A stretch of 64,000 bases of DNA from the sequence record NC_019406.1; one strand, given 5' to 3'. The notes under the pieces were generated by a model. The model saw only the letters and a program-made list of their open reading frames with translations. It did no database searches and was not told the origin of the DNA. The position numbers were made by a program, and so were the translations under genes. Shown one piece after another: positions 478-63,402 of this stretch. Every line of letters starts with the position of its first letter. Positions within the stretch are counted from its first letter, which is position 1.

Positions 478-521
478 GTCGTTCTCGGAGGAGGCCCTTG
501 TTAACCATACTGGCGCCGGGG

Positions 522-3971: not shown

Positions 3972-4001
3972 ATGGTTAACGGGTGCCAGGATTCCTGTCA
4001 A
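3972..4001 (-). promoter_or_regulatory. promoter for the dcm-polA operon with operator and CtrA-type half-site
   Basis: minus strand TTGACA-N16-TTAACCAT; TGCCAGGATTCCTGTCA at 3984-4000. Confidence 0.65.
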
Positions 4002-7365: not shown

Positions 7366-7460
7366 GCCGGGATAACTGGCATGGTTAACCGAAAGCGTCA
7401 AGAATCCTGGCATTTCTCTCCAGGCTTGACCGTTACGGCCCTTACGGATAGGGAATAATC

Positions 7461-13601: not shown

Positions 13602-13674
13602 AGGGTCCTCGGGGTTTTCCCATGGACCCTATGGTTAACGGCTAGGACGTGTCAAGAATTCTGGCGCCTGGGCG

Positions 13675-22802: not shown

Positions 22803-22858
22803 GCGACAAGTTGACGCAGAGAGTTGACAGCCGGCACAAGCTGAGCCATAACCCTGCT

Positions 22859-58228: not shown

Positions 58229-58286
58229 GTTGACAGCCGACATTCGGGCTGCTTAGTGTCAACCTAACTGGCAAGCGGAACCATTC

Positions 58287-58694
58287 ATGCCACTCTCCGA
58301 AGACGAAGCCCTCCTCCTCCGCGACGGTGATATCGTGCTCGTGCCTATCAAGGTGGTGCGCTCGAACAATCACTTTGATCGCGATGGCGTCTCGCTTCGA
58401 GTTCAGTCCCCGCAGATTCTTCACGGCCGGGATGAGATCGAGAAGGGGCAGCCGGAATTCAGCATCAAATCCTCGCAGGTCCACAGCATTGCTGTGATGC
58501 CCCTGCGCCTGAAGGATCACGTGAAGTGGGATGCGTCCGGTCCGGGCGCCGATTACATGCCGGAGACCGGCGTGGTCGTCCACATCGATGGCGACGACAT
58601 CACCGTGAAGCAGGACAAGGAACGCACGCCGCGAAACCGAGTGATCCTCCGCAGTGCCCTCACCCGTTACAACCCTAAGCCCAAAGAGGCCTGA
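58287..58694 (+). CDS. hypothetical protein
   Basis: 135 aa below a TTGACA promoter. Confidence 0.65.
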   Translation: MPLSEDEALLLRDGDIVLVPIKVVRSNNHFDRDGVSLRVQSPQILHGRDEIEKGQPEFSIKSSQVHSIAVMPLRLKDHVKWDASGPGADYMPETGVVVHIDGDDITVKQDKERTPRNRVILRSALTRYNPKPKEA

Positions 58695-59278
58695 TGACCT
58701 CCCCGCAATCCTCGACGCACCGCGTCATTCGTATCCTCAGCCGCGTGATCTTTGAGACTCGGTGGCTGCTGGTCCCGATCTATCTGGCGATGATCATCGC
58801 CATCGCGGCCTATGTGATCCTGTTCACGAAGCAGGCCATCGATATGGGCCTGGGCGTATGGCATTGGGATGCGGAGCACTTGCTGCTCGCCTCCCTCGCG
58901 CTCGTCGACATGTCGATGGTCGCCAACCTGATCGTCATGATCCTGGCCGGCGGTTTCTCAACCTTCGTCGCCGAGTTCGATCAGAGTCTGTTCCCGAATC
59001 GCCCGCGCTGGATGAACGGACTCGACAGCACCACGCTGAAGATTCAGATGGGTAAGTCGCTCATCGGCGTCACGTCGGTTCACCTTCTCCAGACGTTCAT
59101 GCGCCTGCATGACATTCTGAAGGAAGAGAACGGCAAGTTCCTCGTCGCTACCGAGATCATCATCCACATGGTCTTCATCATCACGACGGTCGCCTACTGC
59201 TACATCTCCAAGCTCACCCACGGCCACAAGGTCGCGCCGGCAGCCCTGCCGACGCCGGCCTCTGCGGAAGGACACTAA
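58694..59278 (+). CDS. UPF0114/YqhA-family membrane protein
   Basis: SRVIFETRWLLVPIYL, LVDMSMVANL, SLIGVTSVHLLQTF. Confidence 0.9.
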   Translation: MTSPQSSTHRVIRILSRVIFETRWLLVPIYLAMIIAIAAYVILFTKQAIDMGLGVWHWDAEHLLLASLALVDMSMVANLIVMILAGGFSTFVAEFDQSLFPNRPRWMNGLDSTTLKIQMGKSLIGVTSVHLLQTFMRLHDILKEENGKFLVATEIIIHMVFIITTVAYCYISKLTHGHKVAPAALPTPASAEGH

Positions 59279-59280
59279 AC

Positions 59281-59793
59281 ATGAAGCTCCTGCGAGCTAT
59301 CCTCCTCGGCGCGACCGCCGGCCTGCTGGTCGCCGGCCCGCTCGCCCTCTCGGGCTGTACGGACCCCGTCGCCCGTCACCACGTCGTGCGTGGCAAGCAC
59401 AAGGTCCACAAGCTCTCAGACGGCCGCTATGCCTTCCAAGGCGACAACGGCGTCTGGTACTGGTACATCTACAGCGCCAACAACTCGGCGCGGCTGGAAG
59501 ACGGCACGCTCGCCATGCCGGGCGCCTGGACCGCCGGCGGCGAGCCTGACGCCAGCGACCTCGCGGCTGGGTTCGACTTCGACTTCGACATCCCGACCCT
59601 GGACGGCGGAGCCCCGATCTCCGAATCGCAAGCGGCTTCGATCGAGAGCGGCGCCGCTGAAGCGACGTCGGAAGCTGGCGGCGGTATGTCGGACACTTCG
59701 TCGGGTCCCTCGGACTCGTCCCCGTCGGTCGACTCCAGCGTCGATTCGGGCGGCGGCGGCGACTCCGGTGGTGGCGGGGGCGACGGAGGCTGA
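59281..59793 (+). CDS. putative lipoprotein with a Ser/Gly/Asp-rich tail
   Basis: signal with LSGC lipobox. Confidence 0.7.
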   Translation: MKLLRAILLGATAGLLVAGPLALSGCTDPVARHHVVRGKHKVHKLSDGRYAFQGDNGVWYWYIYSANNSARLEDGTLAMPGAWTAGGEPDASDLAAGFDFDFDIPTLDGGAPISESQAASIESGAAEATSEAGGGMSDTSSGPSDSSPSVDSSVDSGGGGDSGGGGGDGG

Positions 59794-59795
59794 TC

Positions 59796-60356
59796 ATGGG
59801 TCAGTACATCTGGCATGATCTGCCGCTCGACGAGCGGCTTAGCAAGCCCAAGATCGATGATCGCCCTGGAGCCCGGTTGAAGGCGGAGGATGCCCGAGGG
59901 CTCCTTCATTTCCCGGACCGTCTTGGCGATCTCCTGACCCTCAAGAGCTGCCTCGCCGGCGCCAAGATCGTTTTCAGTGGAAACGGTTATGCGCCGTCGG
60001 TGACGGCCTGGGGCTGGACACCGCGCGACCAAGAGGTCATCGAAGACTACGTCAAGCGTCGCGTCGAGAAGCACATGAGCAGTCTGACCGAACGTCAGGG
60101 CCTCGTACTCCTCGCTGTACGTAATGACGGCAGCGTCGATGTTGCGACCTGGGGCAAGTCGTCCCAGGACTGCAAGGTGCTCGGTGACCTTGGCAGCAAG
60201 GAATTGGGCGCACTGCCGTCGTGTCCTTTCCAGACTTGGTGGGGCTGGGGCAATGGAGGCGTGCCCAAGCGTTTCCCTGCGCAGACCCTCAAGACGCTGT
60301 CGGAGAACGCCCAGGCCTACGTCAAGAAGAACACGCATCCTGGCGCGGTAGGCTGA
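59796..60356 (+). CDS. hypothetical protein
   Basis: 186 aa in the operon. Confidence 0.7.
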   Translation: MGQYIWHDLPLDERLSKPKIDDRPGARLKAEDARGLLHFPDRLGDLLTLKSCLAGAKIVFSGNGYAPSVTAWGWTPRDQEVIEDYVKRRVEKHMSSLTERQGLVLLAVRNDGSVDVATWGKSSQDCKVLGDLGSKELGALPSCPFQTWWGWGNGGVPKRFPAQTLKTLSENAQAYVKKNTHPGAVG

Positions 60357-60718
60357 TGGAGGGTACCTCCTACTGTTGCCCAGACTGTGGTGAGGGTTTT
60401 CCCAGCCGCTACAGTCTGGGCCAGCATATGAAGGCAGCGCATCCGGTCGTGCCTCAGGTCTTGAACATCCGCGACTACCCTGATGGCCTGCCGCCTAACT
60501 CGACTTATGTCGGGCGGGGCACGTTCGCTGGAAATCCCTATCGCATTGGAATCGATGGGACGCGAGATGAGGTCATCAACCATTATGAGGACACGCGCGA
60601 ACTGGATGAAGCCTTCGTAGCCAGGGTGCGCAAAGAACTGCGCGGCCGGCATCTCGTATGTCACTGCGCGCCAGAGCGATGTCATGCCGACTGGCTGCTC
60701 AGGATCGCCAACAGCTAA
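60356..60718 (+). CDS. C2H2 zinc finger fused to a DUF4326-like domain
   Basis: CPDCGEGFPSRYSLGQHMKAAH; YVGRGTFAGNPY, LVCHCAPERCHADWL. Confidence 0.8.
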   Translation: MEGTSYCCPDCGEGFPSRYSLGQHMKAAHPVVPQVLNIRDYPDGLPPNSTYVGRGTFAGNPYRIGIDGTRDEVINHYEDTRELDEAFVARVRKELRGRHLVCHCAPERCHADWLLRIANS

Positions 60719-60901
60719 GCCCTTGCTTTCGCGAGAAATCATCGTTATCCATGTGGCGAGTTTGGGGCCAGATTAGGGCTTCATTAACCATGTGGCTGAA
60801 AAATAACGATAAATCTTGAACCCGAAAGTTGACAAACGCCGTAATCTCGAAGATGAAGGCGTCAAGTTCAACTTCAAACGCGAAAGGGGAGTCCTCACCA
60901 C

Positions 60902-61393
60902 ATGAAGCTCAAGATCATCGCCATGGCCGGCATGCTCGCTGGCGTCGCTATCGCCGGCGCGGCCTGTGCCCAAGCGGTCGGGGAGGACTCCACCTGGAAA
61001 TTCCGCACCCCGTCCGAGAACGTCATCCTCCAGCAGAACCTGGACAAGATCGACCTCCAGAAGGCCGGCTACTACGACAAGCTGAAGAACGGCGCCTATG
61101 GCCTGGGCGGCAGCGCCGGCGCGGCCGGCGGGCTGCTCGGAGGCGGAGCCTCGACCATCAGCAACTACTACTCGATCACGAACCAGACCACGAACAACTG
61201 CTCGTCGTCTGGTTCGGTCGGTTCGCCGATCTCCTGCGGCTCGGGCTCGATCACGAGCAGCGGCGTCTCGCAGTCGACGGTCGGCTCGTCCCTGGACTCC
61301 AACACCGCGCTGACGGGCAACACCGTCACCAGTACGGGGAACAAGACCCAGGTCGGCGGCACCATCAACAACAATCAGCAGCCGCAGCAGTAG
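60902..61393 (+). CDS. secreted Ser/Asn/Thr/Gly-rich protein (possible HfaA/curlin-like subunit)
   Basis: signal peptide ending ACA-QA; low-complexity beta-prone C-terminus; first gene of the operon. Confidence 0.75.
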   Translation: MKLKIIAMAGMLAGVAIAGAACAQAVGEDSTWKFRTPSENVILQQNLDKIDLQKAGYYDKLKNGAYGLGGSAGAAGGLLGGGASTISNYYSITNQTTNNCSSSGSVGSPISCGSGSITSSGVSQSTVGSSLDSNTALTGNTVTSTGNKTQVGGTINNNQQPQQ

Positions 61394-61402
61394 GGGGCGA
61401 AC

Positions 61403-62248
61403 TTGAACCGCAAGGTCTACATCCGCGCCGCCCTCGCGGTGGCGCTGCTGGCTTCGGCCGCCGCTATGCCGGCCCAAGCCGCTTCCAAGAAGAAGCCGAT
61501 CGCCACGAACCTCGGCAGCACGCCGACGGTCAACGCCGATCCGCTGGCCGCAGGCTTTGCCTGCACGAGCCAACTCACGGCCCAGGCTGCGCATCCGCTG
61601 CGTATCGCCGTCGGCAAGGTCGGTGACTTCACCGGCAAATTCTCGAACGAAGCCTCCGAAGGCGGCTTCCGCGTGACGCAGGGCGGCGCCCTGATGATCT
61701 CCAGCGCCCTGGGCAAGCTGGCCAACGTCGACCAAGTCGAGCGTCTGGACACGCAGGTCGCCGACATCGACACGCTGCTGGCGAAGTCTCAACTGCTTCG
61801 CGACGGTGACGCCCTGCGCGGCCTGACCGCCGGCCAGTATGACGGCTCCGACTACTACATCATCGGCGGCATCACCGAGGTGAACTACAACATCCGCTCG
61901 GGCGGCGGCAAGGTCGGCGTCTCGAACATCTACGGCGGCAAGCGTACGTACACGATGAACGTCGCGGCCGATCTGAAGATCGTCGAAACCAAGTCGCTGA
62001 AGGTCGTCAAGACCATCAGCGTCCAGAAGCAAATCACGGGCTACGAGAACACGTTCGGCCTGTTCACCTTCAAGGGCGACTACCTCTTCGACCTGGACTT
62101 CGGGTCGAAGGGGCAGGAGCCGCTCCAACTCGGGGTTCGCTCCGTCCTGGAGTACGGTACCCTGGAACTCGTCTCGGCGGTGGCTCCGAATCGTGACTAC
62201 TATGTCGCGACGTGCCGCCCCTACGCCGAGGCGATGTTCGGGAAGTAA
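61403..62248 (+). CDS. hfaB: CsgG/HfaB-family secretion channel
   Basis: IAVGKVGDFTGK, VTQGGALM, VERLD, GSDYYIIGGITEVNYNIRSGG, QEPLQLGVR. Confidence 0.88.
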   Translation: MNRKVYIRAALAVALLASAAAMPAQAASKKKPIATNLGSTPTVNADPLAAGFACTSQLTAQAAHPLRIAVGKVGDFTGKFSNEASEGGFRVTQGGALMISSALGKLANVDQVERLDTQVADIDTLLAKSQLLRDGDALRGLTAGQYDGSDYYIIGGITEVNYNIRSGGGKVGVSNIYGGKRTYTMNVAADLKIVETKSLKVVKTISVQKQITGYENTFGLFTFKGDYLFDLDFGSKGQEPLQLGVRSVLEYGTLELVSAVAPNRDYYVATCRPYAEAMFGK

Positions 62249-62336
62249 AGGGGAGGGGCAACCCAACCTGACAGCGTTTGGTGCGGACGCTGGTTTCTCC
62301 CCGCACTTTTCCCTGAAACAAACGACGAAGGACCCT

Positions 62337-63266
62337 ATGCGCAAGCTCATCCTCGCTTCCGCCGCCCTGGCGGCCCTCTTCGCGGCGCCCGCCGCGTTTG
62401 CCGGCAACATCACGACCGGCGTGAATGGCTTCAACCAGAACAACACCACCCCGCAACTGTCGGGGACCCTGCTGACCAACATCAAGGTCGGCGACAAGAT
62501 CGACGCCTCGGCCGCCGCTGTCGGCAACAACCTGAGCCTCGAAGCCAACGGCAACATCACGATCTCGGCCGGCAACCTGGACCAGCAGAACAGCGGCCTG
62601 CAAGTCGGCGCCCTGATCGTGAACGACTCGAAGCTGAACAAGGGCTCGCTGGAAGCCAAGGCCATCGGCAACTCGATCTCCCTGAAGGCCGGCGGCACCG
62701 TCGACGGCGGCAACAACGGCATCGAGCAGATCAACAGCGGCCCGCAGATCGGCGCCCTGGTCGTGAACGACGTGAAGGCCTCGGGCAACATCGACGCTTC
62801 GGCCGTGGCCGTCGGCAACGCTGTCTCGGTCAATGCCGGCACCGACTTCTCGGTCTACGGTGGTGGCTTCGATCGTCAGACCAACTCGGCCCTGCAAGTC
62901 GGCGTCGCGCTGGTGAACGACTCGAAGTTCGGCGGCAAGCTGGACGTCCTGGCCCAAGCCGTCGGCAACAGCCTGTCGACCGACACCTCGTCCACGACCC
63001 TGCAATGGTCGCAGCGCAACACCGCGCCGCAGTTCGCCCTGGCCGCCATCACCGACGTCAAGGCCTCGGGCAACACCTCGATCTCGTCCGTCGCCGCCGG
63101 CAACCTGATCAACGTCTCGACCAACAACATCGGCCAGACCGCGATCTTCCAGACCAACTTCGCGCCGCAAGTCGCCGCCACGTACATCGCCGGCAGCAAC
63201 TTCTCGGCCGACCTGACCGCCGGCTCGACCGCGATCGGCAACTCGGTCAGCGTCAAGGCCCACTAA
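62337..63266 (+). CDS. secreted repeat protein, HfaD/amyloid-like
   Basis: signal peptide; six ~48-aa repeats QxNxxxQ...AxGN. Confidence 0.75.
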   Translation: MRKLILASAALAALFAAPAAFAGNITTGVNGFNQNNTTPQLSGTLLTNIKVGDKIDASAAAVGNNLSLEANGNITISAGNLDQQNSGLQVGALIVNDSKLNKGSLEAKAIGNSISLKAGGTVDGGNNGIEQINSGPQIGALVVNDVKASGNIDASAVAVGNAVSVNAGTDFSVYGGGFDRQTNSALQVGVALVNDSKFGGKLDVLAQAVGNSLSTDTSSTTLQWSQRNTAPQFALAAITDVKASGNTSISSVAAGNLINVSTNNIGQTAIFQTNFAPQVAATYIAGSNFSADLTAGSTAIGNSVSVKAH

Positions 63267-63298
63267 GCCTTCGATCTGAACTGAGATACTGGACTACG

Positions 63299-63331
63299 GA
63301 AAGCCCGGCGCGAGCGCCGGGCTTTTCTTTC
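63299..63331 (+). terminator. intrinsic terminator
   Basis: AAAGCCCGGCG/CGCCGGGCTTT followed by a T run. Confidence 0.85.
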
Positions 63332-63402
63332 GGCTGACACCGAGTGTTGACAGCCGGCGCCGGGGCAGTCTAAAACCGACATCTGATCTGACAGGAGACC
63401 TC

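Follow-up and report, generated by a model that had tools for sequence, protein, structure and literature searches.

A candidate HfaA-HfaB-HfaD-type module for export and anchoring in Caulobacter phage CcrColossus

Background

The closest described system to the locus reported here is the holdfast anchor of Caulobacter crescentus, which consists of HfaA, HfaB and HfaD together with HfaE. The gene order hfaA-hfaB-hfaD is conserved in the Caulobacterales (10.1101/523142). HfaB is required for HfaA and HfaD to reach the cell surface (PMC6707917; 10.1101/2022.07.20.500906). The anchor proteins HfaA and HfaD form multimers that resist heat and sodium dodecyl sulfate (SDS) and are found at the pole with the holdfast, and the loss of any host anchor protein leads to holdfast shedding (PMC6707917). 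Early in infection, the TgrL protein of phage phiCbK represses hfiA and raises holdfast formation (PMC10688885). Here we describe three adjacent genes, gp241, gp242 and gp243, found in a stretch of 64,000 nucleotides of the sequence record NC_019406.1 (the window, meaning the whole DNA that was analysed). The source of the window is Caulobacter phage CcrColossus, as positions 60700-63400 are 100% identical to positions 184700-187400 of JX100810. Our preferred reading, which we hold with a little more than even confidence, is that gp241-243 constitute a self-contained system for export and anchoring, encoded by the phage and comparable in type to HfaA-HfaB-HfaD, that is produced in the infected cell and does not belong to the virion.

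Conservation is poor in the right arm of the CcrColossus genome, where the cassette lies among neighbours of unknown function, and the genome paper lists gp241-243 in a supplementary table only, without discussion (PMC3556154). Previously only the pore had been annotated, and the cassette as a unit is not described in the literature that we found.

Results and discussion

A three-gene cassette with the architecture of a holdfast anchor operon

Between the upstream non-coding region and the terminator there are three genes only, gp241, gp242 and gp243, all on the same strand and none of them broken:

Upstream non-coding region, 60719-60901, plus strand, 183 nt; probable regulatory region of the cassette, conserved relative to phage CcrPW.
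gp241, 60902-61393, plus strand, 163 aa; open reading frame with ribosome-binding site, predicted secreted G/S/T/N-rich protein in the hfaA position.
gp242, 61403-62248, plus strand, 281 aa; CsgG/HfaB-family channel protein with a leader of the signal peptidase I (SPase-I) type and no lipobox.
gp242-gp243 spacer, 62249-62336, plus strand, 88 nt; 99% identical to CcrPW.
gp243, 62337-63266, plus strand, 309 aa; HfaD-like, predicted all-beta and secreted, with six repeats of about 48 residues.
Intrinsic terminator, 63298-63331, plus strand; hairpin core at 63303-63322 plus U-tract.

A first-pass annotation, made from the letters and reading frames of the window, had described this three-gene layout at this place, closed by a terminator, and both points were borne out by the reading frames and by folding. 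The terminator hairpin reaches -26.6 kcal/mol (z = -4.2 against shuffled sequences) and is also annotated in the record. We treat gp241-243 as a unit because the TTG start codon of gp242 falls 9 nt past the gp241 stop, because the strong terminator is followed by a new promoter, and because the three genes co-occur across loci. This new promoter, RpoD-like and presumably serving the next gene, starts at 63347, downstream of the terminator, and matches 12 of the 14 positions of the Caulobacter RpoD consensus (PMC8144410). Elsewhere in the cassette the predicted RNA structures were at background: the hairpin in the gp242-gp243 spacer was as stable as its shuffles (z = -0.37), and the fold of the 5′ leader was not better than shuffled sequences. 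No second copy of gp241, gp242 or gp243 was found within the 64-kb window. In all three proteins a basic n-region is followed by a hydrophobic stretch and an A-x-A-type site, features that were read directly from the sequence.

Like the C. crescentus anchor operon, the cassette encodes a small secreted protein, a CsgG-like pore and a larger secreted repeat protein in the same order. The best named match of the pore is HfaB, the family of the third protein bears the HfaD signature, and the cultured phages that carry the cassette infect holdfast formers. The cassette differs from the Caulobacter anchor in being phage-encoded and in scoring under the curated cut-offs. HfaB is described as a lipoprotein, whereas gp242 has no lipobox; the HfaE preprint mentions cysteines in HfaA and HfaD, whereas gp243 has no cysteine; and no HfaE-like gene is present in the cassette. 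Measured by the curated thresholds, the cassette belongs to neither HfaB nor HfaD; it is best classed as a phage-borne variant of the CsgG/HfaB-type system.

The pore protein gp242

The assignment of gp242 to the CsgG/HfaB family, suggested at first pass, held firmly. The protein matches the Pfam model of this family (PF03783) over residues 58-259 with 51.3 bits and an E-value of 1.2e-13, above the gathering score of 20.8. Its best named family is HfaB of NCBIfam (NF037935, an equivalog model with a curated cut-off of 300 bits), with 206.9 bits and an E-value of 3.1e-61, and its relatives score 206-251 bits against the same model. HfaB is far closer than the CsgG of curli, whose equivalog model yielded an E-value of 4.3e-5 and 23 bits of the 505 required. 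The solved CsgG chains 4uv2, 4uv3, 3x2r, 6si7 and 6lqh nevertheless align with gp242 residues 66-258 at E-values of about 1e-5. Judging from this family membership, gp242 would form an outer-membrane channel. Its position and the gene that follows it fit the placement of HfaB between hfaA and hfaD, the first gene having been compared with curated models only. In PHROGs, gp242 belongs to phrog_20175, a family listed with unknown function, and gp241 and gp243 are absent from this database.

Cysteines appear in gp242 only from residue 54 onwards and its leader ends in an A-x-A site; the protein therefore lacks a lipobox, as had been read from the sequence at first pass. The cysteine at the leader end is kept in most relatives of gp242, including the 92%-identical protein P0004, and the lipobox is retained in several pores of the phage clade, for example those of the Brevundimonas phages. 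Cys54 and Cys271 of gp242 are invariant among its relatives.

The repeat protein gp243

The six repeats of gp243 that the first-pass annotation had proposed, each of about 48 residues with QxN and AxGN motifs, could be placed exactly. They cover residues 32-80, 81-128, 129-178, 179-223, 224-269 and 270-309 (40-50 residues each), with QxN motifs starting at residues 34, 83, 131, 181, 226 and 272 and AxGN motifs at 61, 109, 158, 208, 253 and 299. Their mean pairwise identity is 35%, and the self-similarity of the protein (z = 5.8) was reached by none of 2000 shuffles. The AlphaFold2 (AF2) model, built with 35 family members in the alignment, is confident (predicted local distance difference test, pLDDT, of 91.9; predicted template modelling score of 0.87) and all-beta, with three strands per repeat. 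Foldseek neighbours of this model, all of them weak, were almost exclusively beta-helix or solenoid proteins and included the functional amyloid FapC, autotransporter passenger domains, ice-binding proteins, tailspikes and phage 'curlin associated' proteins. The arrangement of strands and the nature of these neighbours make a beta-solenoid-like fold plausible for gp243, a rod on which Q, N and G-N positions would be stacked, and this agrees with the beta-solenoid idea voiced at first pass. No relative of gp243 by sequence was found in the Protein Data Bank (PDB).

Two models represent HfaD, NF037936 of NCBIfam (cut-off of 100 bits) and PF27277 of Pfam. Against the first, gp243 scores 24.5 bits (E = 1.5e-5) and its relatives 15-31 bits, far below the cut-off; HfaD is the sole or best NCBIfam match for gp243 and for five of the ten relatives tested. 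Precomputed matches to PF27277 exist for the relatives P0002, P0123 and P0124 and for the third gene of locus L014, the last of them weak. The local Pfam copy matched neither gp243 nor P0002 and so apparently lacks this model. The gp243 family is rare, with 34 cluster representatives among 1.84 billion proteins. A curlin repeat was detected in neither gp241 nor gp243 (no Pfam or NCBIfam match to a curli family at E-values up to 1).

The first gene, gp241

The composition of gp241 (G 15.3%, S 13.5%, A 9.8%, T 9.2% and N 8.0%) and its leader are in line with the secreted S/N/T/G-rich protein announced at first pass. Its N-terminal domain links it to cellular proteins. When profiles were compared with hhalign, residues 12-64 of the gp241 family aligned with the proteins encoded upstream of cellular CsgG/HfaB genes with a probability of 96.6% (E = 5.9e-10), and a hidden Markov model of these upstream proteins ranked gp241 first among the 698 reading frames of the window (E = 0.0013). 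This places the small first gene in a widespread unnamed family that is nearly always paired with CsgG/HfaB-type pores in Proteobacteria. By analogy, the N-terminal domain may be the part that targets the protein to the channel. In the mechanism that we propose below, gp241 is a largely unstructured protein.

Two cysteines in the mature part of gp241, Cys100 and Cys112, are invariant among its relatives. GenBank labels gp241 as a 'putative lipoprotein', a label that we did not adopt. Only four of eight members of the family have the leader Cys22, the leaders of the rest being of the plain A-x-A kind, so lipidation is unlikely to be a feature of the family.

The cellular gene pair to which gp241 leads is itself unnamed. 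At loci L003-L012 and L028-L106 it consists of a secreted protein of about 190-250 aa followed directly by a lipoprotein in which CsgG/HfaB is fused to OmpA. The first protein of the pair, with its conserved N-terminal domain and a cysteine close to the C-terminus, belongs to no Pfam or NCBIfam family.

Distribution, phylogeny and selection

Among 50,697 phage records, a CsgG/HfaB gene was present only in CcrColossus, CcrPW and five phages of Brevundimonas pondensis, and all of these phages belong to the Dolichocephalovirinae. It had been surmised at first pass that HfaB-like genes might already be annotated in related phages, which is the case for CcrPW and Kabachok; both also have counterparts of gp241 and gp243 on either side of the pore gene. 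In CcrPW the label reads 'transcription activator protein hfaB', which looks like an older name and is at odds with the literature, where HfaB serves as an outer-membrane pore (PMC6707917; 10.1101/2022.07.20.500906). A database-scale search matched gp241 and gp243 only to CcrColossus and CcrPW, the Brevundimonas counterparts being known from local comparison only.

The full triad also occurs on uncultured contigs, at loci L013, L014, L024, L025/26 and P0123. We infer that these contigs are phage-like, since they carry dense, small, same-strand genes without family matches. L014 is syntenic with CcrColossus, and L024 carries tRNA-synthetase fragments and a homing endonuclease. On plasmids, only distant CsgG/HfaB genes were found. 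In the metagenome scan, from which the best 80 loci were retained, none of the loci scored reached the HfaB or HfaD cut-offs, and a genome scan with gp242 returned only its closest relatives, none of them from Caulobacter.

A member of the small upstream family adjoins the CsgG/HfaB gene in 91 of the 103 loci examined, and a gp243-like gene lies downstream in only 14 of the 103. Most cellular pores have both an OmpA fusion and a lipobox. Eleven loci with the triad, and no others, form a single pore-domain clade with no OmpA-fused member inside (neighbour-joining tree, no bootstrap). Among these eleven, L002 is a cellular locus that has EutB and LarA genes in its vicinity. This locus, from a metagenome-assembled genome (MAG) of the Stellaceae, holds the closest cellular relative of the pore and has the same triad.

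All three genes are under strong purifying selection. Between CcrColossus and CcrPW, the ratio of nonsynonymous to synonymous substitution rates (dN/dS) is 0.014 for gp241, 0.031 for gp242 and 0.143 for gp243, at dS values of 0.10-0.21. The proteins diverge out of step between more distant loci. At L013, the third protein is 57% identical to that of CcrColossus, the pore 42% and the first protein 32%, while at L014 the third protein is 31% identical, the pore 67% and the first protein 66%. This pattern suggests that the third gene has been exchanged between cassettes.

The upstream region and a possible link to CtrA

The region upstream of gp241 differs from that of CcrPW at two positions in a 195-nt alignment (99% identity). 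Together with the spacer, it is conserved beyond the level of synonymous sites, whose divergence in the adjacent genes is about 0.2, and this suggests a regulatory function. Three short elements within it are relevant here:

TTGACA hexamer, 60829-60834, plus strand; no -10 partner within 10-19 nt.
TTAACCAT, 60784-60791, plus strand; ungapped variant of the CtrA-binding motif, a candidate site.
Best -10-like element, 60808-60815, plus strand; 6 of the 7 informative RpoD -10 positions, 16 nt after TTAACCAT.

The first-pass annotation had placed the promoter of the operon at a TTGACA at about 60828. The hexamer is there, one base further on, and it did not hold up as an established promoter. A scan for E. 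coli-type sigma-70 promoters upstream of the cassette found no site on the plus strand, and the best match of the region to the Caulobacter RpoD consensus (10 of 14) equals the median of random 183-nt windows. In view of the missing -10 element and the background-level score, we regard the TTGACA as a hexamer match and not as a demonstrated promoter.

The element TTAACCAT offers another route. It corresponds to a published ungapped variant of the CtrA motif in C. crescentus (PMC6180460) and occurs five times in the window against 0.35 expected, a count reached in none of 100 shuffles. CtrA activates from sites near -35 and represses from half-sites that cover the -10 element (PMC6180460), and for phiCbK-like phages CtrA sites have been reported and CtrA binding shown (PMC9437464). 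The -10-like element at 60808-60815 does not score above background when taken alone. Half-sites of the TTAAC type were found upstream of related cassettes at six of seven loci, with 15 copies in 1354 nt; their density of 11.1 per kb compares with 0.26 per kb elsewhere in the same sequences, and none of 2000 shuffles reached 15. The canonical full CtrA site, TTAA-N7-TTAA, is absent from the window. Given the enrichment of TTAACCAT and of the half-sites, the spacing to the -10-like element and the CtrA sites known in phiCbK-like phages, we propose that host CtrA probably drives the cassette through the TTAACCAT located at -35 distance from this element.

The four other copies of TTAACCAT lie at 501-508 (plus strand), 3972-3979, 7381-7388 and 13631-13638 (all minus strand). 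The three minus-strand copies are found 7-16 nt downstream of TTGAC(A/G), just before the starts of minus-strand genes, which is the layout described for CtrA-repressed promoters, with a half-site over the -10 element. The copy at 501-508 has the opposite orientation and stands beside a TTGACA.

Comparison with other secretion systems and phage regulators

The curli system of E. coli resembles the cassette in that gp242 aligns with CsgG chains and in that the proposed substrates are Sec-exported, Q/N/G-rich, beta-forming repeat proteins. It differs in several respects, since the cassette has no curlin repeat, no CsgE or CsgF genes and no lipid anchor, and its repeat unit is about 48 residues long. 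The identification as a holdfast-anchor or curli-like operon, given at first pass, is supported. A pore near HfaB, a third-protein family with the HfaD signature and the hfaABD order agree with it; the points that do not fit are the scores below the HfaB and HfaD cut-offs and the missing curlin repeat, CsgE and CsgF.

The two-gene modules of Sphingomonadales and other Alpha- and Betaproteobacteria share the gp241 N-terminal domain in their first gene, and their pores are 42-50% identical to gp242. In contrast to gp242, the pores of these modules usually bear a lipobox and end in an OmpA domain that binds peptidoglycan, and they fall outside the phage-type clade; a third gene of the HfaD kind is absent. 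The phiCbK regulator TgrL is comparable in another sense, as the product of a phage of the same subfamily that acts early on the holdfast programme of the host. It is an XRE regulator unrelated in sequence, which targets holdfast synthesis and supplies no envelope hardware, and phiCbK is without the gp241-243 cassette.

Proposed mechanism and alternative explanations

We postulate that the three proteins would cross the inner membrane through Sec and be cut by signal peptidase I, as read from their leaders. Based on its family, gp242 would then assemble into a CsgG-like channel in the outer membrane. By analogy with the HfaB-dependent export of HfaA and HfaD, gp241 and gp243 would reach the surface through this channel, gp243 as an all-beta repeat rod of 12-rung-like form with stacked Q/N and G-N positions, and there the two could form a stable anchor-like or fibre-like structure. 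Expression would probably be under host CtrA through TTAACCAT. The most likely purpose would be a change to the adhesive pole of infected cells, for instance by tethering holdfast or another polysaccharide while the phage takes over host expression. We favour a probable role in polar adhesion or holdfast tethering because the carriers infect holdfast-forming genera, because the architecture is that of an anchor operon, and because phiCbK, by repressing hfiA, raises holdfast formation. The roles that had been put forward at first pass, namely shedding or re-anchoring of the holdfast, export of an amyloid and masking of receptors, are speculation.

Several observations weigh against an anchor module of this kind. 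The scores of gp242 (206.9 of 300 bits for HfaB) and gp243 (24.5 of 100 bits for HfaD) lie below the curated cut-offs, and for this reason the phage proteins may not fit the holdfast machinery of the host at all. The likeness to the Hfa system was assessed through curated family models only. A lipid anchor, described in both HfaB and CsgG, is missing from the pore, whose family is not holdfast-specific, as close relatives are found in bacteria not known for holdfasts, such as the Stellaceae MAG L002. gp241 matches no named family in Pfam or NCBIfam and no HfaA-named model, and its AF2 model is unreliable (pLDDT 36), so that of the structure predictions called for at first pass the one for gp243 was informative and the one for gp241 unusable. 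The fold search with gp243 against PDB and BFVD returned no significant match (E below 1e-3 with a meaningful TM-score), and its solenoid geometry is predicted from strand pattern and neighbours. As for regulation, the link between CtrA and the cassette consists of motif statistics, and a single locus, L024, provides 7 of the 15 half-sites. More generally, any role of the cassette is predicted from sequence.

The products of gp241 and gp243 could instead cover the cell surface as a polar barrier or decoy, masking the pilus-portal and flagellar receptors of phiCbK-like phages or trapping incoming virions, and so protect against superinfection while sparing the progeny, with no part for the holdfast. 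We consider this unlikely. The module is complete, with pore and substrates, and well diverged from the curated Hfa models, as would be expected if it does not dock to host parts. The third gene is the most variable of the three (its identity between loci is 31-57%, its length 309-500 aa and its dN/dS the highest), which is typical of exposed surface proteins, but its dN/dS of 0.14 is purifying and not diversifying. In biofilms of E. coli, phage T7 is known to be bound and trapped by curli fibres (PMC8346279), and phiCbK-like phages adsorb at the pole (PMC3556154). That the products are placed at the pole or cover receptors is nonetheless an assumption, and a barrier would leave unexplained both the restriction to phages of holdfast-forming genera and the hfaABD-like gene order. 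Still less probable, in our view, is that the phage proteins interfere with the host anchor by mixing or competing with HfaA, HfaB and HfaD, so that the holdfast is shed and infected cells stay or become planktonic. Loss of anchor proteins does shed the holdfast (PMC6707917), gp242 has lost a lipobox that its 92%-identical relative retains, and the curated Hfa models recognize the phage proteins as related, at scores below threshold. For interference, however, one poisoned subunit would suffice, and a complete triad under strong purifying selection would not be needed. The lipobox is moreover kept by several relatives in the phage clade, such as those of Brevundimonas phages, and the effect would run opposite to the holdfast-promoting action of phiCbK TgrL (PMC10688885).

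Two further explanations agree poorly with the presence of signal peptides, with a genomic location apart from the structural and lysis modules, and with the purifying selection. That gp241-243 are virion parts, assembly factors or lysis helpers seems very improbable to us; a place in the virion had been named at first pass as an outcome that would refute the proposal. The beta-rich repeats of gp243 and the tailspikes among its weak structural neighbours would suit such a role, and the published virion analysis covers phiCbK only and not CcrColossus (PMC3556154). On the other hand, all three proteins have predicted cleavable Sec signal peptides and the middle one belongs to an outer-membrane channel family. 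On the genome, the structural module (gp38 to about gp125) is far away and the lysis cassette (gp134-137) does not include these genes, none of the eight listed phiCbK virion proteins is a counterpart of gp241-243 (PMC3556154), and phiCbK, like its close relatives, assembles the same virion without having the cassette. We find it equally hard to credit that the cassette is a bacterial passenger with no role in infection. It does sit in a poorly conserved right arm among genes of unknown function (PMC3556154), and L002, the closest cellular relative of the pore, has the same triad. Yet strong purifying selection acts on all three genes, the flanking non-coding DNA is conserved, the upstream regulatory motif is shared, and the triad is kept across phages whose proteins are only 31-57% identical.

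An export and anchor module made in the infected cell is the reading that we prefer. A further-reaching version, which we put forward as tentative and rather doubtful, is that certain large phages, forming one lineage and infecting stalked Alphaproteobacteria and their relatives, possess their own anchor or fibre secretion system, independent of the host and wired to its cell-cycle regulator CtrA. Such a system might build a polar structure only in the infected cell type and belong, together with regulators like TgrL, to a broader strategy by which phages reprogram adhesion, with a lipobox-less pore that would reach the outer membrane without lipidation. If the proposed module is real, it would be a second independent sign, after the holdfast switch-on by phiCbK, that phiCbK-like phages act on host adhesion, and a rare case of a lytic phage with a whole outer-membrane secretion unit. 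A minimal, diverged version with three genes, a non-lipidated pore and a short HfaD-like rod could also reveal which features of HfaA-HfaB-HfaD are essential.

Genomic neighbourhood and other observations

The neighbourhood of the cassette contains further genes that appear to be directed to the envelope. A UPF0114 membrane protein is encoded at 58694-59278, and the product of 59281-59793 has a clear lipobox and an acidic Ser/Gly-rich tail. A 'putative lipoprotein' gene is found two genes downstream of the cassette; in the record, the genes gp237, gp238 and gp245 make up this envelope-directed neighbourhood. Directly upstream of the cassette lies gp240 (60221-60718), which encodes a DUF4326-type protein with a zinc-finger-like N-terminus and whose counterpart keeps its position in L014 (4960-5337) and CcrPW. 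Synteny further includes a BCS1-type AAA protein upstream and an AAA_21-like ATPase downstream.

On the minus strand, a frame of 689 aa spans the cassette (60773-62842), and CcrPW annotates a 42-aa minus-strand gene in the upstream region (L016, 2371-2499). Both look like by-products of high G+C and not like genes.

A promoter-like pattern recurs on the plus strand of the window, in which a TTGACAGCC start is followed 14-15 nt on by an RpoD-type -10 element. It was found at 22824, 27984 and 63347, and also at 58230, 51459 and 53541. With the Caulobacter RpoD consensus as reference, three of the TTGACAGCC-type sites reach 12 of 14. They look like promoters that the host RNA polymerase would use in this arm of the phage genome.

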